The translations under genes were made by a program, and so were the position numbers. A stretch of 64,000 nt of DNA from Mizuhopecten yessoensis (Eukaryota): positions 1 to 64,000 of the forward strand of contig NW_018406060.1 of NCBI RefSeq assembly GCF_002113885.1. The letters run 5' to 3'. The notes under the pieces were generated by a model. It did no database searches, was not told the origin of the DNA, and saw only the letters and a program-made list of their open reading frames with translations. Shown piece by piece: positions 5,721 through 48,299 of this stretch (position 1 is the stretch's first letter; each line of letters begins with the position of its first letter).

Positions 5721-7304
5721 ATGGCAGAAAAGGCGATTTCTTTCTATAAAGGACAGATAGTGGTTCGCAGCCAGGATCAAACTAGATGTGTACACCACAA
5801 AAGCGAGATCTTGGATTGGTTTTGTGAGACATGTTATGACGTCATATGTGCCAAATGTGTGTCCACTTCACACAAAGGTCATGACAATATCCTACTTAGT
5901 GAAGTTACTCTCGACAACAAACGTAAGATAAAATCATTCATAAATGAAACGGAGCAAAAAGAGCTGATTGGAATTCAACAGGAAATCATTTCAACACAGC
6001 ACAGTCTGGATGAAGACTTGAACCATTTCGAGAGTGTAGCGGAAGAAGTAAAAGAGCAAGGGGAGAAACTTAAGAAGGATATTGATGTTTTGATATCAGA
6101 AACACTATCTCGGTTGAAACATCTAGAAGAAGAAAATACTAAACTGCTCACCAGTTACAGCACTGAACTTGAGAAAATACTAGCAGACCTAAAGGAACAA
6201 CTAACACACTGTAAGGAAACTCTTCAGACAGGCACAGATATCCAGGTGTTTAACCTTTCAAAAGGACTTCAGACAAATATCACCTTACCTGAAAAACCAA
6301 AGTTAGGTTCTGCCAAATTCACCCCAAACAACAGAAGGAATATAATCTTGAAGGAGGCATTTGGAAAAGTTTCCCTGAGACCATCGGAACAGTCTCAGTC
6401 CACTACCGGCCCTGACCAGTCAGATGAAACATCAGTTGATGATAACCCGCTACCTTCCGGACATCAACAATCAGTTAAAGGGAGCACTGACACAGGTCAA
6501 TACCAGAAGAGGGTTCTTCCTCCTCAGATTAAGATTATATCAGAATGGGAATCGCCATGTCGAATAAATGCTATGTGTCCCAAAAGTGGTGGCGGCGTTT
6601 GGACAAGTCCCGGGTCCAAAATGACCCACCTAAACTGTCAAGGAGAGATACAGCAGGAGATAAAGAGTCCTGTCTACATCAACGATATCACTTTATCCCC
6701 TACTACACACAACCTCTGGGCATGTTCTTCAGGTAAACTGACCCGCAGATTCAAAACAAAGGATAAACCCCGATGTCTGTGTATTACAAGAGATGGATAT
6801 ATTCTTGTGGGAACAAAACACAGAATTACCGAGTACACTCCAGAAGGGAAGCCCGGTATCGCCACCAAAACATATTTGTTCAAGAAACCGAAGGTACGTT
6901 CACCACAGAGTATATCACAATGTCCAATCAATGACAATGTCGCTGTCGTTGATAGAGATGATGCAGATGATGGTGGCAAGGACAAACCAACAGTCATAGT
7001 GCTGGACAGACAACTACAGCAGTTATACAGGTATGGAGAATCACAACATTACAGCGGATCTATGTCTCTAGCTTTTCGTCCCTGGGATGTAACGTACGAC
7101 AGTCTAGGGTTGCTGGTGATAGCTGACCTTGCCAACAAAGGCCTACATCTGCTGAGTGGCGATGGACAATACCTGCGACTGTTATATACTGACCTAGCAT
7201 GTCCCTTGGCTGTATTGGTAGACACGGAGGGAGTTCTGTGGGCGGTGTTTGGTTTATCTAACACTGATCAAAAGGTGAAACGTCTACAGTACACAAGTGT
7301 TTGA
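5721..7304 (+). CDS. RING-less TRIM-like protein (B-box2, coiled coil, NHL-like beta-propeller), copy 1, ~527 aa
   Basis: B-box2 motif CVHHKSEILDWFCETCYDVICAKCVSTSHKGH; heptad-rich helical region; NHL-like blades (PWDVTYDSLGLLVIADLANKGLHLLSGDGQYL). Start placed at MAEKA, which aligns with the paralogue starts (in-frame ATG also at 5703). Putative acceptor ttcgttacag at 5511. Confidence 0.9.
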   Translation: MAEKAISFYKGQIVVRSQDQTRCVHHKSEILDWFCETCYDVICAKCVSTSHKGHDNILLSEVTLDNKRKIKSFINETEQKELIGIQQEIISTQHSLDEDLNHFESVAEEVKEQGEKLKKDIDVLISETLSRLKHLEEENTKLLTSYSTELEKILADLKEQLTHCKETLQTGTDIQVFNLSKGLQTNITLPEKPKLGSAKFTPNNRRNIILKEAFGKVSLRPSEQSQSTTGPDQSDETSVDDNPLPSGHQQSVKGSTDTGQYQKRVLPPQIKIISEWESPCRINAMCPKSGGGVWTSPGSKMTHLNCQGEIQQEIKSPVYINDITLSPTTHNLWACSSGKLTRRFKTKDKPRCLCITRDGYILVGTKHRITEYTPEGKPGIATKTYLFKKPKVRSPQSISQCPINDNVAVVDRDDADDGGKDKPTVIVLDRQLQQLYRYGESQHYSGSMSLAFRPWDVTYDSLGLLVIADLANKGLHLLSGDGQYLRLLYTDLACPLAVLVDTEGVLWAVFGLSNTDQKVKRLQYTSV

Positions 7305-8390
7305 AGCAGACTATATTTGTTATTACATTTACGAGTAGTACAAAGGTCGAACATTATCAACTCAAGTGTCGCATTAAACAATTAGTTCCTCTATATTTGA
7401 AAGAATTAGTTAAATTATCCTGCAAATACTGTCTTTAATGATGTGATAACTAACATTAACACTTCCCAACGAAGTTTTGTTATGATTTTGAATGAAAAGA
7501 TAAATAATAACAATCTATGACCTTTAAATTTTGACATATATAAGTGTATACATATATTGGTAATCAATCGATTGGATAAATCAAGTATAATTACTTGGTA
7601 TCAATTCAACCCATTCTCTCCTTTTGTCGAATTCCATCTGTTTCAAAGTATAATTCAAACCATGTAAATCGTCTATTAATATTGTTGTATTTCCCACATT
7701 CCCGAAGGGCAATTGAACCTATGCTATGCCGTGGCGCAGAATCTGTCGTCTGATACCTTTTCTTTGAACAACCTGTTTTTCCTAAATAACGGAAAGGCTT
7801 TGGCTTTGTAGAATTTGATTAACTACCGAAACTAAATCTATTTTTTATTCCGTGCTTATATTAAGTTTGTTATGCCACAGTTCTTCAGAACATCTTTGTT
7901 AAATAACCAATAAAAAGAACTTTTCATACATAATAAATAGCTAGCAAGAAATAGGTGGTATCCCATTGTGAAAGACAACGGTGTACACATCAGGGGCTTG
8001 TTGCCTTACAATGCTGTAGATAAGTATATAAGGGTAACATTGAGGACAGGGAAGTAGAGCTAAATCAACTGTGCAAACAACTTCTTTTATAAAGCATTAA
8101 GGTACATGTAGGTACATGTATAACTTTGGCCGGGTAAACACAGATGGCCAGATATGTGTACCTGTAATCACCTGGCAGAGAAGACAAACTTTCTGCATTA
8201 CAGTTATGTTGATAATTTGTTGCTATTGCTGGTGATGGTGTTTTGCTTTTGTGTGAAATGTATTCATGCTAATTTTATCAATGAAACCATACGCGTTTTG
8301 CCGGGAAATCGTACAAGTACAGGGGGGCATCTTGGTAGAGAAAAACAAGGCACAAACTGTAAGGAAAGTCTAAAATGAATATAGGAAGGT

Positions 8391-10404: not shown

Positions 10405-10702
10405 TGCGCTACAGTGTTAACTCTAGTGCACTACGGTGTAAACTCCAGCGCACAACAGTGTTAACTCAAGTGAACTACGGTGTTAACTCCAGCGCACTAC
10501 GGTGTTAACTCCATCGCACTACGGTGTTAACTCAAGTGTACTACGGTGTTAACTCAAGTGCACTATGGTGTTAACTCCATCGCACAAAGGTGTTAACTCA
10601 AGTGTGCTACGGTGTTAAATCCAGTGCACTACTGTGATAACTCAATCTATGGTGTTAACTCCAGTGCACAACTGTGATAACTCAAGTGTACTACGGTGTT
10701 TA
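10405..10702. repeat. Minisatellite, ~22-bp unit (actacggtgttaactc[a/c]agtgc), ~13 copies
   Basis: Directly visible tandem array. Confidence 0.9.
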
Positions 10703-11155
10703 CGCTAGTTTAATAGACTGAAGTACAAATTTAGGTCATTGTTTGGGAAATAAAGGCAAAATGTATTATATGATAATTGAATGAGCAGAGATAAAATATC
10801 AATTGACTATCGCATAATTTTTCTGATTTTTCAAAATTTCATTTTGATATGTTTAAACAGGATAAATTGTATTCTATTATAGGTGATTGTAAAACACTAA
10901 TAGTCATTTGTTTAATTTCAAACGAAAGCAGTTTTATACTGAAGTATGTGTTAATTATGTGAGATTGTTAATCCAAAGTTGTCTGCCTTTAGGAAACCTT
11001 AACAGAGATAGGTCTTACATGTACCTGGTAAGGACAAATAATAGTAAAAGTAATCATGATAATAGTGCATTGTCCCCTTTCTCTTCTCCCCATCCCCAAT
11101 ACCTTACATATCCTTCTAGTTTTGCCTTGGCCCTAGCCAGGAGGCTATGTGGCTC

Positions 11156-11370
11156 TAACGAACAATAGTTTAGGGCACCTGGTGATGGCTGACTATGCCA
11201 ACAAATGCTTCCTACTGCTGAGTGGTGATGGACAGTATCTGCGACTGCTACATACTGACATAGGCAGACCTTGGGCTTTATGTGTGGACACGTAGGAAGT
11301 CCTGTGGGCGGTGTTTGGTACATATGGCACTGCAAAAAATGTGTAACGTCTCCAGTACACAAGTGTTTAA
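11156..11370 (+). pseudogene. C-terminal remnant of a TRIM-like NHL gene (last blades) with in-frame stops; degraded upstream module at ~7980-10320
   Basis: Aligns to 3' end of paralogues (ctgctgagtggtgatggacagtatctgcgactg ... cagtacacaagtgtttaa); GAG>TAG and AAA>TAA changes; upstream donor mutated to cag|ttatgt at 8203. Confidence 0.85.
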
Positions 11371-16972: not shown

Positions 16973-17893
16973 ATGGCAGAAAAGGCGATTTCTTTCTATA
17001 AAGGCCAGATAGTGGTTCGCGGCACGGATCAAACTACATGCATGCACCACAAAGGCGAGACTTTGGATTGGTTTTGTGAGACATGTTATGAGGTCATATG
17101 TGCCAAATGTGCGTCCAATTCACACAAAGGTAATGACAATATCCTACTAAGCGAAATTACTCCCGACAACAAACGTAAGATAAAATCATTTATAAATAAA
17201 ATCGAGAATACAGATTTAATTGAAATTCAACTGGGAATCAGTTCATCGCAGCAGAGTCTGGATGATGACTTAAACAATTTCAAGAGTATAGCAGAGGAAG
17301 TAAAAAAGCAAGGGGAGAAACTTAAGGAGGATATTGATGTTTTGATAGCGGAAACACTTTCTCAGGTGAAACATTTAGAAGAAGAAAATACTAAACTTCT
17401 CACCAGTTTCAAGTCTGAACTCGATAAAAAAAACAATCAGACCTAAAGGAACAACTGAGACACTGTAAGGAAACTCTTCAGACAGGCACAGATATCCAGG
17501 TGTTTGACCTTTCAAAAGGACTTCAAACAAACATCAACTTACCTGAAAAACCAAAGTTGGTTCTGCGGCTGCATCCCAAACAACAGAAGGAATACAATCC
17601 TGAAGGAGGCATTTGGAAAAGTTTCCTTGAGACCATCGAACAGTCTCAGTCCTCTACCGGCCCTGACCAGTCAGATGAAACATCAGTTGATGATAACCCG
17701 CTACCTTCCGGACATCAACAATCAATTAAAGGGGGCACAGGCACAGGCACAGGCACAGGTCACGCGACAGTTATATACTGATATAGACCTACCCTTTGTT
17801 GTATGTGTTGACACGGAGGGAGTTCTGTGGGCGGTGTTTGGTTTATCCAACATTGATCAAAAGGTTAAACGTCTACAGTACACAAGTGTTTAA
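16973..17893 (+). pseudogene. TRIM-like copy 2: frameshifted, with ~700-bp deletion of most of the propeller; first ORF (16973-17446) encodes B-box + partial coiled coil, 157 aa
   Basis: Frameshift at A-run ~17426-17433, further indels at ~17556 and ~17637; junction (ggcaca)4 ggtcac|gcgacagttatatactgat at ~17764 joins the linker to the last blade. Confidence 0.9.
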
Positions 17894-18734
17894 ATAAGAC
17901 CATATTTGCGTTTACGTGTAGTACATAGGTTAAACTTTACCAAGTCATGTGACACATACAACAAATGTCGCATCAAACAATAAGTTTCTATATATTGGTA
18001 AGAATGAGTAAACGTTTCCAGCAAATACTGTCTTTAATGATGGGATGATTAACATAATAATTACCCAACGACGTCAATCAAAAATGGTTTTGTAAATATA
18101 TTTATGAAAAGAAAAATAACAACAATCTATGACCTTACCTTTTCAGTATTGAGATATATAAGTATATACATATATTCGTAATAATAATACCAATTATTTA
18201 ACTCCTTAATATCCACAATGCTATATATATCCAAACTTGCGTATATATTCTATCTAAGGAAATATCAATCTATCGGATAAATCAATTATAATCACTTGGT
18301 ATCAATTAAGTCCAACTTTATTTTCTTCGAATTCGAACTGTTACTAAGAATTATTCAAAACATGTTATCAATATTGTTTTATATCTCATATACTCGAAAG
18401 GCAATTGAACCGTGGATCAGAGTATGTCGTTCGTTGACGTTTCATTTAAACAACCTTTTTTCTTTTCCGAAAAGGCATAGGGTCAGCATATGTCACTGGT
18501 AGCTCCCCTGGATAAGCGAGGTTTGTGAAAAAATGACTTCGACCCAGAATGACCAACTAGCCTCGGATTATTACATTTGGCCAGTAGTCATCGTTGGATG
18601 AAGAACTACAACGGTAGCTATATTGAATGATCTTGTTGTGTTGAAATAATTAAACCAGTAATTTTGAGCAACCAATAACTAAAGCCACTTACAGGTAATA
18701 CTATTCGTACGTAGCTTAAGTAAGCCCGTTTAAG

Positions 18735-19069
18735 AATAATAATAATAATACTTCGAGGTTCTTATATATTGCTTTATCACAACCTAGTTCGTAGGTTGTC
18801 TCAAAGCGGTTCACAAATTATGATCCGTGGTTATAGGGCTTTTGCAACAAGACAATATCTTTCTCAACTCCCTGGGATGCATACCGCCGGAGCTGCCATT
18901 TCGGCGCTAACAGCTAGCATTCAACAATTCTAGCGCTGCCCAACAACGGACTCATATACAGCTGAGTAGATTGGAGCAAGCGGAGTAAAGTATCTTGCTC
19001 AAAGGTACAACGCAGTGCCGTGCCGTTTGGTCACGAGCCCGGCGTCCTACCACTAGCCTCCGTGCCTCC
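18735..19069 (-). mobile_element. tRNA-derived SINE with L2-like tail (copies at 27991-28326 and 28643-28956)
   Basis: Minus-strand head ggaggcacggaggctagtggtaggacgcc (A-box-like; B-box appears deleted), conserved-domain-like ttgagcaagatacttta...tcagctgtata, (tat)n tail; empty site at ~36840. Confidence 0.75.
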
Positions 19070-20579
19070 TAAATATTTGACATTTGGCCACTTTTGAGGT
19101 TACAAGTATGATATTAATATCAGGTGAGCGGTGAGGTCGCATTGGGACTCTTTATTCAATATTCATAACTGTGATGTCAATACAACAGAATTAATTATGC
19201 TATACTGATTTTTATTTTGTTTAAATGTTATTGTTTTAGAAAAAAGCCCACATCTTTTAAATCTGTTCAAATTGAAATTGATCAAATATAGATAGTTTAA
19301 TATACAATTTTATACTACAAATCAAAATTTTAAGCATTTTTAAATATTTTAAAAGTTCTATAATGTCTATATTTCCCCTTTCTTATATGAAACCAGTATA
19401 ATATTCAGTCACGTAGTCGAAAATCATCGCTACTGGCACGAATAACATTATTTTAAAGCGAATCTTGTATTACTGAATATAGATTTGTTACATTCATAAA
19501 AAACAAGCCATTTATTTGAAGCAATTTACGCTTTACTTTAAGGAGACAGATGAAAGGAAAATGACCAAGCCAGATAACGACAATAATTCCATGTAAATAG
19601 ATTATTTTTTGAATGATAAAATTAATAATAAATACTCAGACATTAATGTTTTTAAAGTAATTCCTTGCAGTTGATTAAAGTTTATTTCCACCGCCGTTAC
19701 AGAGTAGCACTTAGAAAGATTAACAGTAATGTAACTAAGGTGACGGAACCCGTCTGTATCAACACACACGCGTCTATGACAACGGCCGTAGCAACGCGAA
19801 AAAACCAACCGTCTTTTATGAGAAATCATGCCTTGTACAACTATACCATAATTAGTAAGGTGATTTAAAAGTAGTAATTAATAACTGTCATACAGGTCAA
19901 GTGTCAACANTTCATTTCACCGCTTCATGAAATCGACCATTTCAATAAAGAATTATGATATTTGAATTTATTGTTAATTTGTGTAAGTCATGATACACAA
20001 ACCATGGTTTAAGATAGATTTAGAGTCTCTAAATGAATGTCTAGATTAATATTGTACTAGCAAACCGATAATGCCATATCAATTTCAGACTTGACATTGG
20101 GGAAGATTTAGATTCAAAATTTAAAAGAATAATCTTAAACTGAAATGAGTATCAAATAATTCAAAGACATTATTTAAATGTGAAAAGTCAAAAAAATAAT
20201 AAGTGTAAATAAAAACTTAATGCGGGTGAAATATGAACAAAGAATATGATACAGACGTAGACTTTGAATTTTGTTTGATTTTGTCGATTTGTTAGACATT
20301 TTGAGATGATGTGTTCCGGAAAGATTATCGTTTTCTAGATCTGCTTTGTCGTTGAAACTTGACTTGTATGACATGTATTAATTAATAGTTTTAAATATTC
20401 TTACTAATTATAGTATATTCGTTTAGGTAACAAAGCCAATTGAAGATACACATCTTTTCTATTGGATATTTTAGTTACTTTAGCGCTAGCGATACTCACT
20501 TTGGCAGGACAACAGTCAATACTGAAGAGGGGGTGACCATTAAAACTTTCCTACTGAAATAACGAGTAAGACCCCGTTA

Positions 20580-21265
20580 CCCCGTTGCTGCTTGAATTCT
20601 GCGATGCATAGATTTGATAAGATACTTTATTTATGTCATAGGGATGTTCTGCCACTCTTCCAGAAGGGCATGGAGCAGTGCGGTTAGAATCTCTGGTGGA
20701 TTGTGGCGCGTTCGAATGCGTCGATCCAACATGTCCACACGTGTTCTATTGGCATGAGGTCGCGACTGTATTTTGACCAAGGTAACGTGTCGACATTGTT
20801 TGGCGAAAATAGTCCATTGCACGTAAAACGTCACATGGCACCGAGAGGTTTTAGAATAACGTCAATTTACAGTTGAGCTGCCAATTGCCTTCAATGACGA
20901 CTAAGGTTTTTTTCTGTTGCATAAAAAACACGTTTGGACGGTATCGCATGAGCCATTGGAGACTGACGTCACGTAGAAGACGCGTTTCAGGGGCATCCCC
21001 ACTGCAACGCGACGCGACTTAATGCCGTAGAGACGGGTCAGCACAGTATCTCGGCTTATTCTAGGTATATCGTGTATCGGAACCACGTGCTAATCGGGCT
21101 ATGTATTGAAGTCTCGCGGACACAAGAACGCGTAGTGTGACATATTCAATTACCGTGTATTAATGGTGAATATGTATGATACCATACTGTTCAACACAGC
21201 TAACATTAATATTATAGATTATGGACATTTAAGGGGGTTGTGTATCCTTTGCGTGTCAGTGTATA
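20580..21265 (-). mobile_element. Highly degenerate Tc1/mariner transposon remnant
   Basis: Translated fragments DMLDRRIRTRHNPP..L..ALLEEWQNIP and ISRDTVLTRL resemble Tc1 transposase; Tc1-like end ...tttgcgtgtcagtg|ta at ~21247-21263. Confidence 0.65.
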
Positions 21266-21529
21266 AATCCATATATGACTCTATATAAGAAAGCTATCAG
21301 CCTAATATGATGACAATTTCGGATCTTCAGAAGAGGTCGTATGACGCTTGTAACACATTTGACCCCTGGCAAAGCTCACTTGACAATCGGGAAGGTGAGC
21401 TTATAAACAATTTCAAGCGAGGACATAAGTGGAATTCTACTTTGTGATAGATGAAATATATGAAAATGTGTTCAGTTGATGTAAAATAACTATAATAAAT
21501 TCATATTACCAATTGGTATTGATTATGCA

Positions 21530-21910
21530 CTACATAATCTGACATGTAATAGATGGGTGTGAATTATACATTACTCAATCCAACATGTGACAAAAAGGTG
21601 TAGATTGTACACCACACAATCTGACATGAAACAAATGGTTGTGGATTATACATTACAAAATATATCCTATATCAAATGGATTATACACTAAAAATCTGTC
21701 AAATAGCAAGTGGACGTGAATTAAACATTAAACAATCCGATATGTGACAAATAGGTATGGACTATACATAATACAATCAGACATTTAACGGATGGGTATG
21801 GATTATGCATTACAGAATCTGTCATTTCACAAATCAGTTTTTATAATACACTACAAAATCTGTTATATAACAAATGGGGATGGAGTATACACTACACAAT
21901 CCGACATAGT
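21530..21910. repeat. Degenerate ~41-bp tandem repeat, ~9 copies
   Basis: Recurring cacaatctgacatg...aaatgggtgtggattatacatta. Confidence 0.75.
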
Positions 21911-22063
21911 AAGCTATCCTTGAACTTTCCATTCTCGACTGTTTCAATTCTATACAAACAATGTTATCATTGTTTCGTTTCGTTCACAAGTTTTACGTTT
22001 TATTACATACATGTAGCCTGGTAATGCTTGGCGTTTGTACTACATAAACAAAGAGAGTTGTAT

Positions 22064-23532
22064 TTAAACATTGTGTACTGTAGTCATTTTACTGTTTGAT
22101 ACGACAAACCGCCCACAGAACTCCCTCCGTGTCTACACATATAGTCCAAGGCCTGTTTTTGTCAGTATGTGGCAGTCGCAGGTATTGGTCATCACCATTC
22201 AAGAGATGGAGGCAGCAGTTAGCAAAGTCAGAAATCACCAGGAATCCTAGACTGTCATACTTTACATCCCAGGATCGATGTTTCCATAACTAAATAATTC
22301 CTGAAGCTTTCTGTCCAGCACTATAACTTCTCTGTTTTCTTTTCCACCATTACCTGTCCGATCTTCATCAACTACGGCGATATTGTTGTTGAGGGGACAC
22401 TGTGCTTTTCTTAATGGTGAACACACCATCGGTTTCCAGAAAAAATATGTTTTGGTGGCGATAACGGGCTTCCCTTTCAGAGTGTATTCGGCGATTCTGT
22501 GTTTTGTTCCCACAAGTATATGTTCATCTCTTGTAACACAGAGACATCGGGGTACATCCTTTGTTTTGAATCTGCGGGTCAGTTCACCTGATATCAGCTC
22601 CATGACACTGTTATCCGACGTAGAACATACCCAGAGGTTGTGTGTAGTAGGGGAAAAACTGATATCTTCGATGTGAACAAGACTCTTTATCTCCTGTTGT
22701 ATCTCTCCTTGACTGTTTAGGGTGGTCACTTTGAATCCGCAATCTGTCCACACGCCACCACCAATTTTGAGACACATAGCATTTATTTGACATGTAGATT
22801 CCCATTCTGATAAAATCTTTATCTGAGGAAGAAGGATTTTCTCTCGGTCTTGACCTGTGCCTGTGCTCCATTTATCTGATTGCTTATGTCGGATGAAACT
22901 TTTCCAAATGCCTCCTTCATGATCATATTCCTCCTGTTGTTTGGGATGAAGTCGGCAAAACCTAAAGTTGGTTTTTCAGGTGTGATGATGTTTGTCTGGA
23001 GTCCTTTTGAAAGGTCAAACACCTGGATATCTGTGCCCGTCTGAAGAGTTTCCTTGCAGTGGTTAAGTTGTTCTTTTAGGTCTGCGAGGTTTTCTCGAGT
23101 TCAGTCTTATAACTAGTGAGGACTCTTCTAAATGTTTCAACTGAGAAACTGTTTCCGCTATCAAAACATCAATATTCTCCTTTAGTTTTCCCCCTTGCTT
23201 TTTACCTCTTCCGCTACTCTCTCAAAATGGTTCAAGTTTTCATCCAGATTGTGCTGTGAAGAATTGATTTCCTGTTGAATTTCAATTAGCGCGTTTTGCT
23301 CCGTTTTATTTATGAATGTTTGTATCTTACGTTTGTTGTTAGGTGTAACTTCACTCAGTAAGACAATATCATGACCTTTGTGTGAAGTGGACACACATTT
23401 GGCACATATGACGTCATCACATGTCTCACAAAACCAATCCAAAGTCTCACTTTTGTGGTGTACACATGTAGTTTGATCCTAGCCGCGAACCACTATCTGT
23501 CCTTTGTAGAAAGAAATCGCATTTTCTGCCAT
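22064..23532 (-). pseudogene. TRIM-like copy 3 (inverted), multiply disrupted
   Basis: ATG at 23532 (MAENAISFYKGQ); CAG>TAG at 23479-23481; frameshifts split the protein into ORFs 23182-23442, 22819-23022, 22262-22777; deletions in linker and late blades. Confidence 0.92.
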
Positions 23533-23591
23533 TTCAGCTAGTTATTTCTAAGGCAGGACATCAACCAATTAGTTTTATCTATATATCATTA

Positions 23592-23664
23592 CAAAGTAAG
23601 TCACAAATTTTGAAGGAAATTATAAATACTGAACGTTTCACGTTTCATTGAACACTTGGTATTT
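23592..23664. repeat. Left arm of a perfect 73-bp inverted repeat (right arm 25238-25310)
   Basis: Reverse complement compared base by base: aaataccaagtgttcaatgaaacgtgaaacgttcagtatttataatttccttcaaaatttgtgacttactttg. Confidence 0.92.
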
Positions 23665-25237
23665 AATGATTTTCAGCTTACCCTATAGTAATAATACAGC
23701 TACATATTTTCTTTAAATGATATGCGTTCAGTATCAATGAACGGTTGGACAAGATGCGCATACAAAATGTTATATTGTATTAAGCTGTTAGTAATAACAT
23801 CGCATTTGTAAATAAGTGAAAATCTTTGCCTGTTCGTTTCCCTCAAGTGCAATATAATGGAGGTAATTTCACTAGTAAGCTTACAAATTAAATATCATAT
23901 TATATGATGACCAAATTGCAGCAGTAACTGTGCTATCTGCTTTATCTGTGTACTTGCCCAGATGTGTTTTGGACTTGTATACCACCCAGTCACAATATAT
24001 GGCCAATATACGTAAGTTATAGCAATGTTGTTATCAATAGAATATAATTCTGTTAAGGTGAGAATTGAATATATCTCACACATCAATAATACATTATGAA
24101 CATGAACACCGCCAACAATAAATTACAAACAAACCTTTATTGATGTAGTTTCCCCCTTTCTACTAGTTAAAGCTTTCACATGCTTACAGGTAAAGAGACA
24201 TAGTTACTTTGTATCTACCTGAACTTGCCATTGCCTTGTCCCTATCTTTGTACCCTAGTTTGACATAGCATGCTATCTTTTATTTGTGACACATGCTGGA
24301 TCTGCCTGGTCAGTAACCTCATTCAACAGTATATGAGAGGTCCTTTATATCTTCTACGATTAAAAAAGTGTTGTTGTTTTTTTGGGTCAATATTTCAGTT
24401 CAGATAGAAATAAAAGAAAACGGGTTTTAAAACAGACATACTAATGCGAACTGGAAAATAATATCAGTGTCCTCTATTTTATGAACAACACTCGCCTTGT
24501 AGAAAAGCAACATTAACAAAAACAAAAAGGATATTGACAAGAATTCACATGTATCATACATGAGCGTGAGAGACCTATTTGAAAAAGACTTAAAAGCTTA
24601 ATGAGTCAAGATACTTTGAGAATCTATAAAACATATATTAGACCATTTTTAAATAGGCTTGTGAACTATGGGATGAATGTGCAAGACACGAGGCTGTAAA
24701 GACAGAGAAACGACAAAGAAATGCTACGCTTATTTTAGCAAAAGTTTCTTTGTAAGCTCGTATCCTTGATTTGCATGTTGTAAAATGTCCGAAATCTTGC
24801 CTTTTGTAAGCCAGGTAGATATTGTGTGTTATCTTTAACTGTGACCCATGCTGGAAACGAAAGGTCCCTTTCAGTTTAAAAGTTCATGTGTTTACAGGTA
24901 GACATTCCTAGTTATCTTGGTATCTTCCGGACCTTGTCTTCGCCGTGGTCGAGTCTGTTGAATTCTAGGTTGATATTGTGTGTTATCTTTACTTGTTTAA
25001 GATGCATGTAATTCATACCTAGACTGCTACTTGCGGCTACTCTTCCTATGTGATGTAAATCATTTCTTCATAATTGATGACATATGATACTGCAAAGACA
25101 TTGTGATTTGAATAATGTGGGTTACAGCAAATGAAATTCACAATTTTTCCAACCTACATTTACTTAAGAGTTTCGAATATGTCAAGCACACTACATTACA
25201 GCACCAAAAAATTACGATATCTGTCTTATGCAGTGTA
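23665..25237 (-). promoter_or_regulatory. Inverted copy of the gene-1 upstream region (~3335-5415), carrying module B and an internally deleted module A
   Basis: Reverse-complement matches, e.g. 24330-24360 vs 4738-4770, 24660-24860 vs 4170-4375, 25185-25232 vs 3330-3375. Confidence 0.85.
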
Positions 25238-25563
25238 AAATACCAAGTGTTCAATGAAACGTGAAACGTTCAGTATTTATAATTTCCTTCAAAATTTGTG
25301 ACTTACTTTGCAATTTTGTTACAGAATCCATGCTGATAACTCACAGTAAGCTGATCATCACAGAAGGGATTATAGACTAAAGATGATCCCTGTATCAAGA
25401 AAGGTCAGTAACATTCACTTGCCGGGATGTGAGGCCCCCGTCATTTGTGTATTACGAGAGGTCAGTAACATTCACTAGGTGGGGTTTCCCCCATCGCCTG
25501 TCTGTTAGCATATATAGATAATACTAATTGGTTGATGTCCTGCCTAAGAAATAACTAGCTGAA

Positions 25564-27171
25564 ATGGCAGAAAAGGCGATTTCTTTCTATAAAGGACAGA
25601 TAGCGGTTCGCGGCCAGGATCAAACCAAATGTGTACACCACAAAGGCGAGTCTTTGGATTGGTTTTGTGAGACATGTTATGACGTCATATGTGCCAAATG
25701 TGTGTCCACTTCACACAAAGGTCATGACAATATCCTACTTAGCGAAGCTACTCCCGACAACAAACGTAAGATAAAATCATTTATATATGAAACGGAGCAA
25801 AAAGAGCTGGTTGAAATTCAACTAAAAATCAGTTCAACACAGCATAGTCTGGATGAACACTTGAACCATTTCAAGAGTGTAGCAGAAGAAGTAAAAATGC
25901 AAGGGGAGAAACTTAAGGAGGATATTGATGTTTTGATAGCGGAAACACTAGCTCAGGTGAAACATTTAGAAGTAGAAAATACTAAACTGCTCACCAGTTA
26001 CAAGAATGAACTCGAGAAAAAACTAGCAGACCTAAAGGAACAACTGAAACATTGTAAGGAAACTCTTCAGACAGGCACAGATATCCAGGTGTTTGACCTT
26101 TCAAAAGGACTTCAGACAAACATCATCTTACCTGAAAAACCAAAGTTAGGTTCTGGCGACTTCACCCCAAACAACAGAAGGAATACAATCCTGAAGGAGG
26201 CATTTGGAAAACTTTCCCTGAGACCATCGGAACAGTCTCAGTCCTCCACTGGCCCTGACCAGTCAGATGAAACACCAGTTGATGATAACCCGCTACCTTC
26301 CGGACATCAACAATCAGTTAAACGGAGCACAGACACAGATAAAGACCCGGAGAAGGCCCTTCTTCCTCAGATTAAGATTATATCAGAATGGTCTCCAGAT
26401 ATGATTACCAAAATATGTCCAAAACATGGTGGCGGCGTGTGGACAAGTGACGGGTACAAAGGGATCCACCTAAACAGTCAAGGAGAGATACAGCAGGAGA
26501 TAAAGAGTCCTGTCTACATCTCATATATCACTTTATCCCCTACTACACACAACCTCTGGGCATGTTCTACTTCAGATAAGAGTGTCTTGGAGCTGACATC
26601 AGGTAAACTGACCCGCAGATTCAAAACAAAGGATAAACCCCGATGTCTGTGTATTACAAGAGATGAACATATTCTTGTGGGAACAAAACATAAAATTACC
26701 GAATACACTCCGGAAGGGAATCCCGGTATCGGCACCAAAACATATTTGTTGAAGAAACCGATGGTGTGTTCACCACAGAGTATATCACAATGTCCAATCA
26801 ATGACAATGTCGCTGTCGTTGATAGCGATCTTACAGATGATGGTGGTCAGGACAATCCAGCAGTCATAGTGTTAGACAGAAAACTTAAGGAGATATACAG
26901 GTATAAAGAATCACAACATTACAGCGGATCTACGTCTCTACTTTTCCCCTATGATGTAACATACGACAGTCTAGGATTCCTGGTAATAGCTGACTTCGCC
27001 AACAGAGGCATACATCTGCTGAGTGGTGATGGACAATATCTGCGACAGTTATATACTGATATAGACCTACCCTTTGTTGTATGTGTTGACACGGAGGGAG
27101 TTCTGTGGGCGGTGTTTGGTTTATCCAACACTAATCAAAAGGTTAAACGTCTACAGTACACAAGTGTTTAA
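25564..27171 (+). CDS. RING-less TRIM-like protein (B-box2, coiled coil, NHL-like propeller), copy 4, 535 aa
   Basis: Intact ORF, same domain motifs, closely similar to copy 1; putative acceptors ttttgttacag (25324) and ctgcctaag (~25548). Confidence 0.9.
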   Translation: MAEKAISFYKGQIAVRGQDQTKCVHHKGESLDWFCETCYDVICAKCVSTSHKGHDNILLSEATPDNKRKIKSFIYETEQKELVEIQLKISSTQHSLDEHLNHFKSVAEEVKMQGEKLKEDIDVLIAETLAQVKHLEVENTKLLTSYKNELEKKLADLKEQLKHCKETLQTGTDIQVFDLSKGLQTNIILPEKPKLGSGDFTPNNRRNTILKEAFGKLSLRPSEQSQSSTGPDQSDETPVDDNPLPSGHQQSVKRSTDTDKDPEKALLPQIKIISEWSPDMITKICPKHGGGVWTSDGYKGIHLNSQGEIQQEIKSPVYISYITLSPTTHNLWACSTSDKSVLELTSGKLTRRFKTKDKPRCLCITRDEHILVGTKHKITEYTPEGNPGIGTKTYLLKKPMVCSPQSISQCPINDNVAVVDSDLTDDGGQDNPAVIVLDRKLKEIYRYKESQHYSGSTSLLFPYDVTYDSLGFLVIADFANRGIHLLSGDGQYLRQLYTDIDLPFVVCVDTEGVLWAVFGLSNTNQKVKRLQYTSV

Positions 27172-31208: not shown

Positions 31209-32570
31209 CTAGCGGAAAAAAGAAACTGTGCATGCCTAAAATGTGTTATAAAAATAAATGTGTATGACGTAGAACAACAAGGTTTTCAGGGACCGTTTGC
31301 CTGAATGCAAGCATGGCAACGTCGACGCATGGAGCCTATCAGACGGTTCAAGAATGCTTGTAGGATGGCATTCCAGATCTGTACCACCACTGCAGCCAAA
31401 TCAGCCAACGTCACCGGTTGATTAGGTAATGCCCGTAATCTGCGCTTCATTTCATCCCAGACGTGTTCAATGGGCGACAGATCGGGGGATACAGCAGGCC
31501 AGGGCAACACGTCAACGTTCTGCTGGGCCAGAAAGTCCATAGCAACACGAGCTGTGTGTGGCCAGGCGTTGTCCTGCTGTAGCGTAATGTGACGTTGCTG
31601 CCCTTGCACGAATGGAACGACGTGAGTCCGGAGGATCTCGTCACGGTAACGTAGCGCGTTCAAATTCCAGTTAACACCCACTAGAGGCGTTCTCCCGTTG
31701 GCTGTGATGCCGCCCCAAATCATAACATAAAAAAAGAACGTCGTTGTACCACACACGCGCCACGGAAACGTTCTCCAACGAGACGATACATTCTGGAACG
31801 GCCGTCACTACTATCAAGGTGGACTCGCGACTCGTCCGTAAACAAAATGCCTGCCAAATCCCGTCGAGTAAATCGCAGATGCCTTCTGCACCAGTCCAGA
31901 CGTGCTACACGATGACGTGGCAGAAGAACTGGGCGGATTGCAGGACGTCGCGGACGGATAGCTCGTTCACGCAATCGGTTCCGTACAGTTCTCGGGCTTA
32001 TTGGTAGCAACCCAGGGATTGTTCGTGCAGTCAAACTTGCCGTTTGGAAGCGATTTCTCAAATGGACAAGCCAAATATGGTTGTCCTGTTGACGTGACGT
32101 CACACGTGGACGTCCCGCACGAGGTCGATCGCCGACGTGGCTGTTGATGTCGTCTCCACAAATCCCGGATGTGTTTCGATGGACATGAAAACGTGTAGAG
32201 ACAACGGCTTGGCCCATACCAGCTTGAAGCATACCAATAATCCGGAGGCGGTCATTTTCATTGAGCCTCGGCATAGCATTAATCACAAATTAAAAAGTTA
32301 TAATGCTGTTTTTACTGTTCACTGGTCTCAACAGAGTGACCCAACAGTTGAAAAATAAACTTTCATTGTCGAATTGGATGGCTGGACGAGAAAAACGTGC
32401 AAACTGGTCAACGCCTATAGAGAGCAAACTGCACGGGAAAAACTGTCAATGACACACGGATAGTATGTATGTGTCATACTCGGTCATGTGTGTGAAATTT
32501 CATGTATATACAGTTGGTAATACATGTTCTATAACAATTCTCCGCATGCACAGTTTCTTTTTTCCGCTAG
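31209..32570 (-). mobile_element. Full-length Tc1-family (DD34E) DNA transposon with frameshifted transposase (~32274-31286)
   Basis: Perfect 27-bp TIRs ctagcggaaaaaagaaactgtgcatgc, TA flanks; motifs GRPR, LFTDESR, QQDNAWPH, SPDLSPIEHVW with 34 residues between D and E; frameshift at ~31725-31740. Confidence 0.95.
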
Positions 32571-33968: not shown

Positions 33969-35384
33969 ATGGCAGAAAATGCGATTTCGTTCTATAAAGG
34001 ACAGATAGCTGTTCGCGGGAAGAGTCAAACTACATGTGTATATCACAAAAGCGAAACTTTGGACTTGTTTTGTGAGACTTGTAATGACGTCATCTGTGCC
34101 AAGTGTGTGTCCACTTCACACAAAGATCATGACACTACCCTACTACGCGAAGTTACTCCAGCCAACAAACGTAAGATCAAAACATTTATAAATGAAACGG
34201 AGCAGAAGAAGCTGATTGAAATTCAACAGGAAATCAATTCTACACAGGACAGTCTGGATAAACACTTGAACGATTCTGAGAGTGTTGCAGAAGAGGTAAG
34301 CACGCAAGGAGTGACACGTAGGGCCCTCACCAGTTACAAGACTGAACTCGGGAAAACACTTGCAAACCTTAAAGAGCAACTAAAGCAATGTAAGAAAACT
34401 CTACAGACTGGCACGGATATCCAGGTGTTTGACCTGGAAAAAGAACTTCAGACCACTAACACCTGCCTTGACAAAACATATGCAGGTTCTGCCTTATTCG
34501 TCCCATACAACAGAAGAAATGAAATCCTGGGTGCTGCATTTGAAAAAGTAACCACCCCACCATCTGGACACATGAAGATTCTATCAGAATGGAACTATCA
34601 GGGTAACATAACACCCATATGTCCCAAAAGTGGCGGTAGTGTGTGGATAAATAACATCTGCAAAGTAACCCACCTTAACAGCCAAGGAACTATGGAGCAG
34701 CAGATGCACACGTTTGGCTTGGCCAGAGATATCTCTGTATCCCCCTCTACACACAATCTATGGATATGTTGTGATTATGATAAAAATATTACGGAGCTGA
34801 TACATGCATCAGGTGTACTGAACCATGTATTCAGCACAAAGGATGAACCCCGATGTCTGTGTGTTAGAAAGGATGAACATATCCTTGTGGGAACAAAACA
34901 CAAAATCACCGAGTACACTCTAGGAGGGGAGCCCGTTATCACTACCAAAACATCATTTTTCAGAAAACCAATAGTGTGTTCACCACAGAGGATATCACAA
35001 TGCCCAATCAACTACAATGTCGCTGTAGTTGATAGAGATCAGAAAGGAGATGGTGGTAAGGACAAACCTGTAGTCATTGTGTTGGACAGACAGCTTAAGC
35101 AATTATACAGGTATGGAGAATCACAACACAACAGTGGCACTGATTTGTGGAGTTTTGATCCCTATGATGTAACGTACGACAGTTTAGGACACCTGGTGAT
35201 TGCGGACTATACAAACAAACACCTCCATCTGCTGAGTGGTGATGGACAATACCTGCGACTGCTGCATACCGACATAGACAGTCCCCGGGCTGTATGTGTT
35301 GATACGGAAGGAGTTCTTTGGGCCGTTTTGGAAGCAGTCTACAATAACGGAAATGTGAAACGTCTACAGTTCACAAATGCTTAA
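33969..35384 (+). CDS. RING-less TRIM-like protein, copy 5, 471 aa, with shortened coiled coil and no S/T/P linker
   Basis: Intact ORF with B-box2 (CVYHKSETLDLFCETCNDVICAKCVSTSHKDH) and NHL-like blades; in-frame deletions relative to copies 1, 4 and 6. Confidence 0.85.
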   Translation: MAENAISFYKGQIAVRGKSQTTCVYHKSETLDLFCETCNDVICAKCVSTSHKDHDTTLLREVTPANKRKIKTFINETEQKKLIEIQQEINSTQDSLDKHLNDSESVAEEVSTQGVTRRALTSYKTELGKTLANLKEQLKQCKKTLQTGTDIQVFDLEKELQTTNTCLDKTYAGSALFVPYNRRNEILGAAFEKVTTPPSGHMKILSEWNYQGNITPICPKSGGSVWINNICKVTHLNSQGTMEQQMHTFGLARDISVSPSTHNLWICCDYDKNITELIHASGVLNHVFSTKDEPRCLCVRKDEHILVGTKHKITEYTLGGEPVITTKTSFFRKPIVCSPQRISQCPINYNVAVVDRDQKGDGGKDKPVVIVLDRQLKQLYRYGESQHNSGTDLWSFDPYDVTYDSLGHLVIADYTNKHLHLLSGDGQYLRLLHTDIDSPRAVCVDTEGVLWAVLEAVYNNGNVKRLQFTNA

Positions 35385-35459: not shown

Positions 35460-35584
35460 CTGCTGCACACTGACATAGAAAGTCCCCGGGTTGTATGTGT
35501 TGACACGGAGGGAGCTCTGTGGCCATTGATTGGTTAATTCGGCTCTGATCAAAAGGTGAAACGTGTATAGTGCACTATGTTTAA
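35460..35584 (+). pseudogene. Orphan duplicate of the last propeller blade/C-terminus, with stops
   Basis: Translates LLHTDIESPRVVCVDTEGALWPLIG*FGSDQKVKRV*; followed by the family-type 3' flank. Confidence 0.85.
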
Positions 35585-38151: not shown

Positions 38152-39358
38152 CTTCAACTTCAACTTCAATGTTTTACTCGACAAAAACCATGTATGGTCA
38201 TCACGTCAAGGGTGACTATGTACATCCGTGCAGTGTGGAGCCTTTGTGCGGTTAAAACTATATACAATCGGAAAAGTCTATTCCACCTCTCCCCTGACTG
38301 CCGCCTTGAAGGCGTCCAGGTCCTCGATGCTGGCGACGCTGGGTGGCAGGAGGTTCCATGTTGTGATGGTGCGGGGGATAAAAGAATGTCTGTATGCGTT
38401 GGTTGCCATATGCGGAGTGTAGAGTTTGTAGGGGTGGCTGTTCCTTGTTGTTGTGACGGTGGAGTAGGTAGGATGGTAGTTGGTTGGTACTGCTATGTGG
38501 TGGTGTAGAATCTTGTGCATAAATATGATGTCCGTTATCTTGCGTCTGTGTTCCAATGTATTCCATCTGAGGTCCTTTATCATCTGTGTAGTGCTGTCAG
38601 GTTTGTTGTAGTTGAGGGGCTTTTTTAGTACGAATCTTGCTGCGTTTTTCTGTATCTGTTCTATCCTGTTGATGTGTTGGGTTGTGTGTGGATTCCAGGC
38701 TGTGGTGCTGTATTCTAGTTTTGGTCTGACAAGGCTTTTGTATGCTCTCTCTTTTACTTGTTGTGGGCAGTGTCTTAAATTCCTCTTCAAAAATCCTAGT
38801 GTTCTGTTGGCTTTGCTGATGGTGTTGTCTATGTGTGTGTTGAATTTGAAGTTGCTTGCTAATTCTACTCCTAGGTATGGGTGGTGCTCTACTATTTCTA
38901 ATGTCTGTCCCTTCATCTGGTAGTTGTAGTGTTGTGTTGTATTCTTGTTGGTGGCTTGCATAATGGCATATTTATTCACGTTAAACTCCATCTGCCAGGT
39001 GTCTGCCCATTGACACAGTGTGTTGAGGTCGCGTTGTAGTTTCTCGTGGTCTTCANTATCTGTCAAAAAGTTGCCAATCCATTTCTGTGTGGTCCCCTGT
39101 ATCCCGTAGTGGTGTAGTTTTGATGAGAGTCGTTGGTGTGCGACTTTGTCGAATGCCTTGGCGAAGTCTAGAATTGCAATGTCTACTTGTGTCTTGTTGT
39201 TGTTGATGTGCTGAGTGATGTCGTCTGTGGTGAGGAATAGTTGTGATTCGCAGGAGCGTTTTCTTCGGAAGCCGTGTTGATTTTCGTGTAGTATGTTCTG
39301 TCTGTCTAGGTGGTCCATTATCTGCGAAACTATGATGTGTTCTAGCATCTTTGAGGGT
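38152..39358 (-). mobile_element. 5'-truncated CR1/L2-group LINE (reverse transcriptase 3' part), middle lost in a contig join
   Basis: NQHGFRRKRSCESQL, LDFAKAFDKV, WQMEFNVNK, YLGV, SFIPRTITTWNLLP motifs; (ttgaag)n tail; N at 39056 replaces the QG/YADD region. Confidence 0.9.
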
Positions 39359-41311: not shown

Positions 41312-41320
41312 GTTTGTTTA

Positions 41321-43225
41321 CGTCGGATAGTAAAATGAGTTGGTATTAGTGACAAAACAACTGAAGAAATTAAAAGCTTCACAGTTTATAAATTTTGTCT
41401 GCACAACACAACTAATTTCATCAAGCCCTCAAAATGACCAAAACATTTCTTTAAACAGCCACGTTATGTGCTTATTTCGGAATTTGAACTTGCATCCGCT
41501 TTCTTAATACATACCAGTCAATCTTCACGTGTAAGAGAAAAAAATCTCTCTTCCTTACTCTCGAGATATAAATAACAAACAAGGATAATATATCGATCTT
41601 CCTCTTCAACAAATCCACTATGAAGAGGTTTCAGAGAAACATTTTCTATGTGCGCGGTTAGGCATGTCCTACTGATAATAGTCCTTTAAATCCCACAAGT
41701 ACCTTTATAGGCGACAATGTCACTTTCTCAAAGTGTAACTTCCAATAACTGAACCCGGATTCCTACCGCTTGAATTAATGGGAAATACCACCTGTGTATT
41801 ACAGAAGTAACAAGTAATTAGAAAGTTGACTCATGTAATATATACCCATTTCATCATTTCCGATTTTGCTAAAACTTTGTAATATATAAAGGACATGTAA
41901 TGGTTTAATGGTATCTGTATACTCGTGAAAAAAATGGAACTCAAAGAGAAAGCCATTGAATTTCTCTTATTACATTTTTCAGTAAGATGACAAAAGTATT
42001 GCCTCCCAAAAAAGTTCAGTAAGTAGTAGCATAGTATTTGACGCCAGGTTTTAAAGAAACCGTGCTTTGCACAAGTTCTGGGCGTAATTTTAAATAAGTT
42101 ACTCCACGCAAAACTGCCTTTTGCAGCTACTATCTGATATGATTTACCAGCAAAATAATATCAATTGCAACATTAATACTGTAGTTTATATAGCAAAGAA
42201 CATCAAAACAACTACCTTATACCGGGAATTTTTCGCTGCAGGCTAATTTTCGCCTTTTTCGCCTTCTGTAATGAGGTCGAATTAATATAAGTAGATAACA
42301 AAGCATTCATAGTAATTTAAAGTGAAAGGCGACATTAACACAGGGCGAAAATGTATTTCTTTGCTAGAGGGCAAAAGATAACTGGGCAAAAATTTCCCGG
42401 TATACAGTACCTATTCTACCGTCGCTTCATCTGCATCTAAAAATCTACGGCTTTGGATGCAGTGAATAGAAAGTATCATTCTGACTGGACAGTGACAAAC
42501 GTGGTATCTTAACATGTAATGTTCAGGATATGAGTATTTGTTAAGTTGATAATTATCAATATTACAGTTTTGTTGAAGTGAATATGTAGTTATATGGAAC
42601 TGAGATTTTGATACTGACCGAAACAAACTGCTAGAAAAAATAAAAACAATCTGTGATATGATAAACACAACCATAGAATGTCTTACGAAACGAGCGCTAG
42701 GCAATCAGAGTTGTCTACCTTGCCATAACGAGATTTGCACTAAGGGCATAAAGATATATTCAAAGTTGAGAACACAGACCATGAGATGAAACACAAAAAC
42801 CTCTTCTTGATAAGAAATATTCCACTGTTTATAAAAAATGGAGTCTATGAAACCACTTGTTTCCGTTTTCCTGGTTATCGTTGTCTACATGTTTGTATTT
42901 TGTCTATTTTGACATGGTACATTAACCAGATTTATCCCAATTTAACCCACTTAAACAGCAAATATTAGTATGTTTTCATTAAAATATTGACAAATTTATT
43001 AAATTGTTTTAAAACATCTCGAATAATGAAAATATTGTCGTGAATATTATCAATTACAACAAACATTTTAATACAGACTTAGCCTTTTTCTTTACTTTCA
43101 TGCCTTGACTTGTTACAAGTTCCGGTGTCTCGTGTCAAAAGAGCCAGAATCTGATTTAATTCTCGAGATAAATACTTGACATCACTATCGAGATACAAAC
43201 AATCAACTAATATTTTAGAAACCTG
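41321..43225 (+). repeat. Duplicated block matching the far-upstream region of gene 1; 41530-41690 also matches 14750-14925
   Basis: See 1494-2565; shared cactatgaagaggtttcagagaaaca with ~14841-14866. Confidence 0.9.
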
Positions 43226-46500: not shown

Positions 46501-46658
46501 TATCTGAACGCCAAAATGGTGTATGTGTGTGAAAGGTATAATTTTGTGATTTTTAATAATGTTATAATCTTATTCATAGGATGAATGCTGATCAATAAGG
46601 ATGAACAGTATTTCATCATGAGATAGCGGCTTTCACCAGGTGAGTGTCCCCATCACAA

Positions 46659-48299
46659 ATGGCAGAAAAGGCTTCCTCTTTCTACAAGGGACAGATAGCT
46701 GTCCGTGACCTGGGTCGGACGACATGCACACACCACAAAGGAAATATTTTAGACTGGGTTTGTGAGACATGCTGTGATGCAATATGTGCTAAGTGTGTAT
46801 CGTCTTTACACAAGGGCCATGACATCGTTCACCTGAGCGAAACTACTGCTGACAACAAACGGAAGATAAAAATATTCATTGATGAAGTCGGCCAGAAAGA
46901 GTTGAGACAAATTCAACAGGAAATAATTTCTACCCGGGAAAGTCTTGAAAATGATTTGAGTCATTTTGAGAGTGTGAGAAGAGAAATGAAAGAGCAAGGT
47001 GAAACACTAAAGGAATATATTGATGTTTTGATGGCCCGAACGCTTTCTCACATTAAACAACTAGAAGATGAAAATGCTAACCTTCTCAAGAATTACAGGA
47101 TAGATCTCGAACAGAAACTTGCTGAACTAAAGGACCAACTGAAACATTGTAATGAAGCCCTTAAAACTGGCACAGATATCCAGGTGTTTGACTTTGTCTT
47201 TAGACTACAGACCAACATTACACTACATGCAGCACCCATCCTTGCTTCCGCCGTGTTCAGCCCTAATGTCAAGAGCAAAGTAATGCTGGAGCAGGCATAT
47301 GGAAAAGTAATCGTTGACAAATCTGGACAAAGTGAAGATCAGTCTACATGTCAACAGGATATCGACTCTGACCAATCACAAGAAACACCAGATCATCAAG
47401 TTCAAGTTCCTCCACTGCAACAATCCAAGAAGGAGAGTCCACAGATGAAAATCAATCAGCTACCACTGTCCGCACTTCTGGCACAGAGTACAGTGCTTTC
47501 AGAATCGATAGTTTCTTCGGAAATTGAGTCTATCTGCCCAACTTGTAATGATGGTGCATGGACGAGTGGACGGATAAGTAACATTGTGACACACCTGACC
47601 AGTCAAGGAGGCGTACATCAGAAGATACAGAGTCATGTTCCGGTTACAGATATCTGTATTTCCCCCTCTACACACAACCTCTGGGCATGCTCTAACAAAG
47701 AATACAATGTCATGGAGTTGACATTAGGTACACTGATCAGTAGGTTCAAAACCACAGATGAACCTAGATGTCTGTGTGTTACTAAAGATGACTGTGTCCT
47801 TGTTGGGTCAAAACACAAAATCACTGAGTACACTAAGGAAGGGAAGAAAGGCCTCGTCAGCAGAACATACCTGTATTTCATGTGGAATCCATTGCTAAAG
47901 TCACCATGGCGGATGTCACAATGTCCAGTCAGCAAGAATATTGCAGCAGTTGACATGGATCTGGCAGATGATGGCGGTAAGGGAGAACCAGCTGTTATAG
48001 TCCTGAACAAACGTCTAAAAGAATTATTCAGGTATGGACGACCAAACCACATCATCAAGTGTGAATCAGGAAAGTTTTGTGCCGCGGATGTAGCTTACGA
48101 TAGCTTGGGACAGCTGGTGATTGCTGACACTGTCAACAGCCTACACCTACTTAGCGGTGATGGACAGTACCTGCGAATGCTGCATACGGACATAGCAAGG
48201 CCATGGGTTCTTTGTGTGGACAGGGAAGGAGTTCTGTGGGCAGGGTTTGGCAGATTCAGAGTTGAGAAAGTGAAACGCCTACTGTACACCAATTTTTAA
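46659..48299 (+). CDS. RING-less TRIM-like protein, copy 6 (most divergent), ~546 aa
   Basis: Intact ORF from ATG 46659 (MAEKASSFYKGQ); B-box2 CTHHKGNILDWVCETCCDAICAKCVSSLHKGH; Q/S/P-rich linker; NHL-like blades; putative acceptor ttattcatag at 46579. Confidence 0.9.
   Translation: MAEKASSFYKGQIAVRDLGRTTCTHHKGNILDWVCETCCDAICAKCVSSLHKGHDIVHLSETTADNKRKIKIFIDEVGQKELRQIQQEIISTRESLENDLSHFESVRREMKEQGETLKEYIDVLMARTLSHIKQLEDENANLLKNYRIDLEQKLAELKDQLKHCNEALKTGTDIQVFDFVFRLQTNITLHAAPILASAVFSPNVKSKVMLEQAYGKVIVDKSGQSEDQSTCQQDIDSDQSQETPDHQVQVPPLQQSKKESPQMKINQLPLSALLAQSTVLSESIVSSEIESICPTCNDGAWTSGRISNIVTHLTSQGGVHQKIQSHVPVTDICISPSTHNLWACSNKEYNVMELTLGTLISRFKTTDEPRCLCVTKDDCVLVGSKHKITEYTKEGKKGLVSRTYLYFMWNPLLKSPWRMSQCPVSKNIAAVDMDLADDGGKGEPAVIVLNKRLKELFRYGRPNHIIKCESGKFCAADVAYDSLGQLVIADTVNSLHLLSGDGQYLRMLHTDIARPWVLCVDREGVLWAGFGRFRVEKVKRLLYTNF

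Follow-up and report, generated by a model that had tools for sequence, protein, structure and literature searches.

An array of related intronless genes occupies ~43 kb of the first 64 kb of scaffold C2733 of the Yesso scallop, Mizuhopecten yessoensis (contig NW_018406060.1 of assembly GCF_002113885.1). This stretch of 64,000 nucleotides, read on the forward strand, is hereafter called the window; the genome searched comprises 988 Mb in 82,659 contigs. Mapping of the family by tblastn of four long B-box open reading frames (ORFs) against the window recovers four open copies (A–D), two broken copies (psi1 and psi2) and two C-terminal fragments, as had been described, coordinates included, in an initial annotation made from the DNA letters alone. 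The genes encode RING-less TRIM-NHL-like proteins consisting of a B-box2, a TRIM-type coiled-coil helix of ~107 residues, an acidic linker and a six-bladed NHL propeller. Such an intronless gene has expanded in tandem in this lineage, the window covering the right-hand part of the expansion, and the changes among the young copies are concentrated on one face of the propeller.

The protein architecture, proposed in the initial annotation, emerges concordantly from Pfam, a profile search of the Protein Data Bank (PDB), AlphaFold2 and Foldseek. Pfam recognizes the B-box (PF00643) in each of A–D with E-values of 1e-9 to 9e-7, and the B-box2 ligand pattern C-x2-H-x8-C-x2-C-x4-C-x2-C-x4-H-x2-H is intact, with all eight ligands, in A, B, C, D and psi2. 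Pfam matches to NHL are weak with single sequences. The AlphaFold2 model of B, built with 19 homologues (mean predicted local distance difference test score, pLDDT, of 77.5 and ~90 in the propeller), comprises the B-box (residues 20–60), one continuous helix (residues 64–170), a disordered acidic linker (residues 225–267, isoelectric point ~4.3) and a propeller (residues 270–535) whose 24 strands form six blades of four. The same single helix at residues 64–170 is present in the model of A. Between helix and propeller, the model of B holds two short hairpins and the disordered linker and nothing else, and a filamin/Ig domain at this place was found neither there nor by Pfam in A–D. In Foldseek searches against the PDB, the NHL domains of TRIM3, TRIM2, Thin, Brat, Lin41/TRIM71 and Mei-P26 come on top (TM-scores by target of 0.72–0.76), and the top 16 matches are all TRIM-NHL domains (0.52–0.76). 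The alignment profile matches the NHL domains of TRIM71, TRIM3 and TRIM2 at E~1e-18, that of Brat more weakly (2e-6), and also the B-box-coiled-coil structures of TRIM5 and TRIM28. On inspection, the N-terminus is free of signal-peptide-like features, so the proteins should be intracellular. Relatives named ‘TRIM71-like’ or ‘TRIM2-like’ in RefSeq match only B-box/NHL in Pfam. An exact-sequence look-up of B, which may omit records of its own genome, returned no record, and a second protein search with the family alignment added only two short proteins.

Table 1. Family units, neighbouring elements and gaps along the window
Feature	Position	Strand	Description	Basis or context
Copy A	5721..7304	+	Open, 527 aa from conserved Met	tblastn, Pfam
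Fragment 1	11155..11367	+	Last 71 codons, 2 stops	tblastn
psi1	16973..17893	+	Broken copy, frame 2>1>2, stops, without codons ~254-493	tblastn
psi2	22047..23532	-	Inverted broken copy, three frames, stops	tblastn; head-to-head with B
Spacer between psi2 and B	23588..25314	.		Bounded by 77-nt inverted repeat
Copy B	25564..27171	+	Full-length, 535 aa	tblastn, Pfam, AlphaFold2 model
Copy C	33969..35384	+	Open, 471 aa	tblastn, Pfam
Fragment 2	35460..35582	+	Last ~40 codons of another copy, 1 stop	tblastn; directly behind the stop of C
Copy D	46659..48299	+	Full-length, 546 aa, most divergent	Positional counterpart of P. maximus LOC117327086
Tc1/mariner-type transposase remnant	31286..32286	-	DDE_3 + HTH_Tnp_Tc3_2	Between B and C
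Reverse-transcriptase ORF fragment	38278..39348	-	Retroelement remnant	Between C and D
321-aa RING-like gene	58016..58981	+	Conserved, single-copy, not a family member	Downstream synteny anchor
N runs	257-1254, 1412-1493, 59708-60023
Single Ns	19910, 28642, 39056		Split the region into separate contigs

The absence of a RING, also claimed initially, is supported. Pfam finds no RING family in A–D, and a C3HC4 pattern occurs in none of the six frames of the 64-kb window. The ATG of B is preceded by an in-frame TAA at a distance of 12 nt, and contigs of the sequencing runs X2 and X4 pass unspliced and without difference from 25319/25324 through this ATG into the ORF. A spliced upstream RING exon, named initially as a finding that would speak against the proposal, is thereby rejected for B. 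Genome-wide, the longest ORF of all 26 paralogues sampled begins with Met and ~20 residues followed by the B-box, leaving no room for a RING. In B, C, D, psi1 and psi2, a motif resembling an AG-type splice acceptor precedes the ATG by ~14 nt; in B, the X2 and X4 contigs cross it without a splice. The RING-like ORF of 321 aa near the right end of the window was considered as the missing RING and rejected, being downstream, single-copy and a single-exon gene of its own that is conserved in P. maximus. It shows weak RING-type matches, and a strongly constrained gene of this kind stands beside the RING-less array.

Copy B, or a near-identical twin, appears to be transcribed. Runs X3 and X4 have no contig on 22001–24800, yet cover 25324–28000 end to end, and X2 is similar; contigs of X2–X4, which stem from three studies, cover 25319–28000 without a splice. 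Since a DNA library would cover both stretches, the uneven coverage means that these runs behave like RNA, which speaks, for B, against the concern that the copies might be untranscribed. A transcription start at 25319/25324, where contigs begin, was considered and discarded: the 77-nt inverted repeat ends just there, and since such a repeat would interrupt a de Bruijn contig, these starts are assembly breaks. Across runs X1–X24, the fraction of the sampled words of 22001–28000 that is present varies from 0.00 to 0.60 within the same studies; expression that depends on tissue or condition could account for the difference, as could presence/absence among animals. At 25885, inside B, and at 27400, behind it, contigs of three or four runs diverge into sequence unlike the window, which could stem from another allele, inserted DNA or a close paralogue.

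The history of the locus can be read against that of Pecten maximus. There, a single family member (LOC117327086, a single exon of 1866 nt with a Pfam match to the B-box only) lies 6.4 kb downstream of calponin and 8.7 kb upstream of the counterpart of the 321-aa single-exon gene, and the 21.9-kb locus contains no other family copy. The 321-aa gene and its P. maximus orthologue (L041:20603-21568) share 89% of their amino acids, with 0.056 non-synonymous (dN) and 0.75 synonymous (dS) substitutions per site, and the non-coding blocks between this gene and D are collinear in the two species. The calponin exons match another Yesso scallop scaffold, C1568 (C1568:397613-399005), 6 kb upstream of its first family copy, and at least six further family units follow there up to the scaffold end (C1568:405167-473184). 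The ancestral single gene between calponin and the 321-aa gene is thus, in the Yesso scallop, an array distributed over two scaffolds. Values of dS are 0.12–0.21 among A, B and the further copies E and F, ~0.47–0.50 from these four to C and ~0.9–1.0 to D. As the values among A, B, E and F and to C remain below the 0.75 of the neighbouring orthologue, most copies postdate the split between Mizuhopecten and Pecten. In the tree, A, B, E and F are grouped (support 99) and are joined by C and one copy of scaffold C4694 (support 100); D and the P. maximus gene fall outside this group, and a cluster on scaffold C4580 forms a clade of its own. Genome-wide, the family amounts to at least 90 scored matches, with 813 first-look candidates. 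The birth-and-death turnover suspected in the initial annotation is supported by this contrast between one syntenic gene and an array.

Recombination has contributed to the turnover. Copy E, on C1568, is 94–98% identical to B over nucleotides 1–800, which encode B-box, coiled coil and linker, and 92–97% identical to A over nucleotides 900–1600, which encode the propeller; the coiled-coil part of A is closest to F. The B-like N-terminus and A-like propeller of E indicate that N-terminal scaffolds and propellers were re-paired by recombination. The chimerism noted earlier therefore holds at the level of the family, through this sister copy; psi1, considered as a chimera, need not be one, both of its halves being closest to B. 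Its 3′ flank (17764–19386) is 91% identical to that of B. The inversion is likewise upheld: psi2 lies head-to-head with B, the two arms are 82–89% identical, and the 1.6-kb spacer is flanked by inverted repeats of 77 nt with 99% identity (23588-23664 / 25238-25314). A single X1 contig links 23588 with 25315 across opposite strands; this may be a graph artefact of the repeat or an inverted form.

The quality of the assembly bears directly on these counts. The window (GC content 31–42%) belongs to a gap-joined scaffold in which the open copies A, B, C and D each lie on a different contig. It is conceivable, if rather unlikely, that the true haploid array is much smaller, several of its apparent units being alternative haplotypes or contigs placed twice in a scaffold built from short reads. 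The stretch 19911–25010, with psi2 and the spacer, is found again with 99.9% identity at the end of C1568 (C1568:468398-473184), the match beginning exactly at a contig boundary, and the two scaffolds therefore probably overlap or belong together. The stretch with copy B (25305–27612) recurs at 98–99.8% in three small N-bounded contigs of C1568 with duplicated overlaps, and a 630-bp repeat of 98.6% identity sits directly across the single N at 28642 (28011-28641 versus 28643-29271). This last repeat is more suggestive of a contig overlap left unmerged than of a true tandem repeat, and the recurrences on C1568 look like redundant placement or unmerged overlaps. Window positions 7.8–17.7 kb are also collinear with C1568:450-462 kb, but at an identity of only 85–93%, which is the level between any two units, and the identity of A to its collinear partner (90%) does not exceed that to F (92%) or E (91%). 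Both comparisons favour a paralogous segmental duplication over haplotypes. Similarly, dS of 0.15–1.0 between A–D, and contigs from independent studies that carry the form of B without the C1568 duplication, speak against inflation; A–D cannot be alleles of one another. The reservation that copies might collapse to alleles in a better assembly is thus apt for psi2 and the C1568 twins of B, for which collapse is likely, and unlikely to apply to A–D mutually. Given the high-identity recurrences and the contigs joined by gaps, the haploid copy number, the order of the units and the placement of the left 19.9 kb are insecure.

Not all open copies appear sound. Amino-acid identity is 81% between A and B and 44–57% in the remaining pairs of A–D, and only B and D match the family consensus over their full length. 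The in-frame deletions listed in the initial annotation are real: A lacks ~10 aa in propeller blade 2, and C has lost 23 aa in the coiled coil and ~40 aa in the linker. The propeller modelled for A comprises 22 rather than 24 strands, blade 2 retaining two of its four and local pLDDT falling to 76–79, and the 23-residue deletion in the coiled coil of C is not a whole number of heptads. Within the window, only B and D thus appear fully sound, whereas A and C seem open yet structurally damaged, which points to an array in partial decay. Such damage, together with two broken units out of eight and two fragments, would suit a neutral history in which the array is the by-product of a duplication-prone region, most copies are becoming pseudogenes and the variable propeller face reflects weak constraint on loops. 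Neutral decay is nevertheless unlikely, as copy B appears transcribed and as the pattern of substitutions departs from it in most of the protein.

The distribution of changes over the propeller was followed after numbering the 24 strands of the model and splitting the loops by face, the odd-to-even loops being D-to-A and B-to-C and probably forming the conventional top face. It is with this face that Brat and LIN-41 bind their ligands. Among A, B, E and F, 54% of the sites in the odd-to-even loops are variable, versus 22% in the loops of the other face and 29% in the strands; the difference between faces (Mann–Whitney p=1e-4) persists with 7 and with 36 sequences. Pairwise Nei–Gojobori ratios of dN to dS (omega) on the variable face range from 0.5 to 1.25, and no pairwise value by domain and face is significantly above 1. 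Parsimony counts on the tree give, for the local clade, an omega of 1.00 on the variable face (confidence interval, CI, 0.76–1.38), which is indistinguishable from neutrality, and of 0.41–0.54 in the B-box, coiled coil, strands and other face, with CIs that exclude 1. The scaffold of B-box, coiled coil and propeller core is under purifying selection, contrary to neutral decay, and the variable face is released from constraint or driven to change, at a rate about neutral or faster. In a dispersed sister clade, omega on the same face reaches 2.29 (CI 1.62–3.40), again at odds with decay; in the C4580 cluster, it is 0.6–0.7 at the variable-face sites (0.71 on the face), without excess, in line with decay, as is the overall omega of 0.56–0.70 among young copies. 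Yet the hot positions recur in three independent clades, among which the per-site non-synonymous counts are correlated (rho 0.38–0.50), and the sites hot in the dispersed clade have an omega of 1.3–1.4 in the local clade (CI about 0.95–2.1) against 0.5 in the rest of the propeller. For part of the family, positive selection is clear; for the local array, it is only borderline. The proposal of a diversified recognition family thus stands for the far greater variability of one face; for diversifying selection within the array the evidence is suggestive only.

Collectively, a lineage-specific tandem expansion of a RING-less TRIM-NHL-like gene whose variable top faces serve different ligands is judged the rather probable explanation. 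In the Yesso scallop, the gene has been repeatedly duplicated, inverted, recombined between N-terminal module and propeller, and partly destroyed. By analogy with other TRIM proteins, its products would be cytosolic antiparallel coiled-coil dimers with a B-box at each end, and each dimer would present two propellers on flexible acidic linkers, the variable top faces binding different ligands, either protein or RNA. Without a RING, they would have no intrinsic E2 recruitment, and because of this absence they would act as adaptors rather than E3 ligases. They might act through sequestration, as Brat does, through assembly driven by the B-box, as TRIM5 does, or by forming heteromers with RING-bearing TRIM-NHL paralogues. 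An immune role of the array is one possibility. Conversely, the copies could be RNA regulators of the conserved type that bind mRNA motifs through the top face and repress translation in development, like Brat/LIN-41. The closest solved folds are indeed the RNA-binding NHL domains of Brat, Lin41/TRIM71 and Mei-P26, and Brat is also RING-less. A conserved function of this kind is improbable all the same: no part of the protein is less conserved than the putative binding face, the net charge of the propeller spans -3 to +6 in six copies (A–D, E and F), some of them young paralogues, which argues against one conserved RNA motif, and the copy number changes from one to many between two scallop genera, unlike that of conserved developmental regulators.

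Several points weigh against the recognition of different ligands by an expanded family. The same spread in net charge indicates no single ligand class. Dimerization is drawn from TRIM homology alone, and the assignment of the odd-to-even loops to the top face derives from the register of the NHL motif and from loop lengths, not from coordinates. Positive selection does not reach significance in the local array, and relaxed constraint on long loops would give the same bias; dS is also raised in the variable loops, and recombination violates the single-tree assumption of the parsimony counts. The deletions in A and C probably damage the fold. Finally, the RNA nature of the runs is a guess, and the transcript check covers B only.

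Known systems share parts of this picture. The class C-VII proteins TRIM2, TRIM3, TRIM71/LIN-41 and TRIM32 have the same order of B-box2, coiled coil and C-terminal six-bladed NHL and provide the best sequence-profile and fold matches. The filamin/Ig domain is present in TRIM2/3/71 and absent in TRIM32 and Brat. The array proteins differ from this class by the lack of RING and filamin/Ig, the single B-box and the intronless coding sequence, and hundreds of fast-evolving copies contrast with few conserved orthologues. Drosophila Brat and Caenorhabditis elegans NCL-1 have in common with them the RING-less B-box/coiled-coil/NHL architecture, and the Brat NHL is among the fold matches. Brat/NCL-1 function via the propeller top face and not by ubiquitin ligation. 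Brat, however, carries two B-boxes and is encoded by a conserved developmental gene present in single copy, whereas the array proteins have one B-box and at least 90 paralogues, match Brat in the profile search less well than TRIM71/2/3 and carry a hypervariable top face. They show neither the two B-boxes nor the one-to-one orthology of the Brat/NCL-1 orthologue group. The mammalian TRIM5alpha clusters and teleost finTRIM/btr genes likewise form tandem birth-and-death arrays, in which a constant B-box/coiled-coil scaffold is combined, as here, with change on the surface loops of a C-terminal recognition domain. The array differs from them in having an NHL propeller instead of B30.2/SPRY, no RING and borderline selection.

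In bivalves, a B-box orthogroup is expanded (PMC8382680). In oysters, many TRIM2/3-, TRIM45- and TRIM71-like transcripts differ between disease-tolerant and sensitive animals and respond to OsHV-1, according to one study and the papers it cites (PMC9892467). In this oyster and mussel work (PMC8382680; PMC9892467), TRIMs are treated as RING E3 ligases, and no RING-less NHL subfamily with its face variability or locus history is described. The open library searched yielded no description of a RING-less NHL expansion in molluscs and no scallop data. The proteins are thus of a known kind in an unusual variant; the history of the locus is well resolved, the copy number is uncertain, and the evidence for adaptive diversification here is only suggestive.

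In farmed bivalves, few gene groups are as expanded and as disease-associated as the TRIM-like genes, which are usually read as generic E3 ligases. The present locus records one such expansion, from one gene in Pecten to an array in Mizuhopecten, dated against a neighbouring orthologue, in a subfamily without the ligase domain and with change focused on one face of the NHL propeller. It is tempting, though tentative, to propose that RING-less B-box/coiled-coil/NHL dimers form a germline-encoded, diversified repertoire for intracellular recognition in scallops. New specificities would arise by tandem duplication, by point changes at about two top-face loop positions per blade and by recombination that re-pairs scaffolds and propellers. 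RING-bearing TRIM-NHL paralogues, acting in trans, or assembly driven by the B-box would provide the output. Such a repertoire would be an NHL-based analogue of the B30.2 systems of TRIM5 and finTRIM. If the face-specific change is adaptive, it would reveal a recognition system on a fold hitherto known mainly for conserved RNA or protein binding and would provide concrete positions at which to look for ligand specificity and for association with disease resistance.

Two minor features accompany the array. A direct repeat of 1.1 kb with 88% identity lies upstream of A (1495-2569) and upstream of D (42138-43224) and is found again at C1568:428577-429353; it probably belongs to the duplication unit or represents a transposon. 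The C-terminal residues of copies A, B, E and F, like those of many dispersed paralogues, are Y-[T/S]-S-V (7293-7301 in A, 27160-27168 in B), a tail that resembles a class-I PDZ ligand; its accessibility is doubtful, because only three residues extend beyond the last strand. In the C4580 cluster, the C-terminus is T-S-D.

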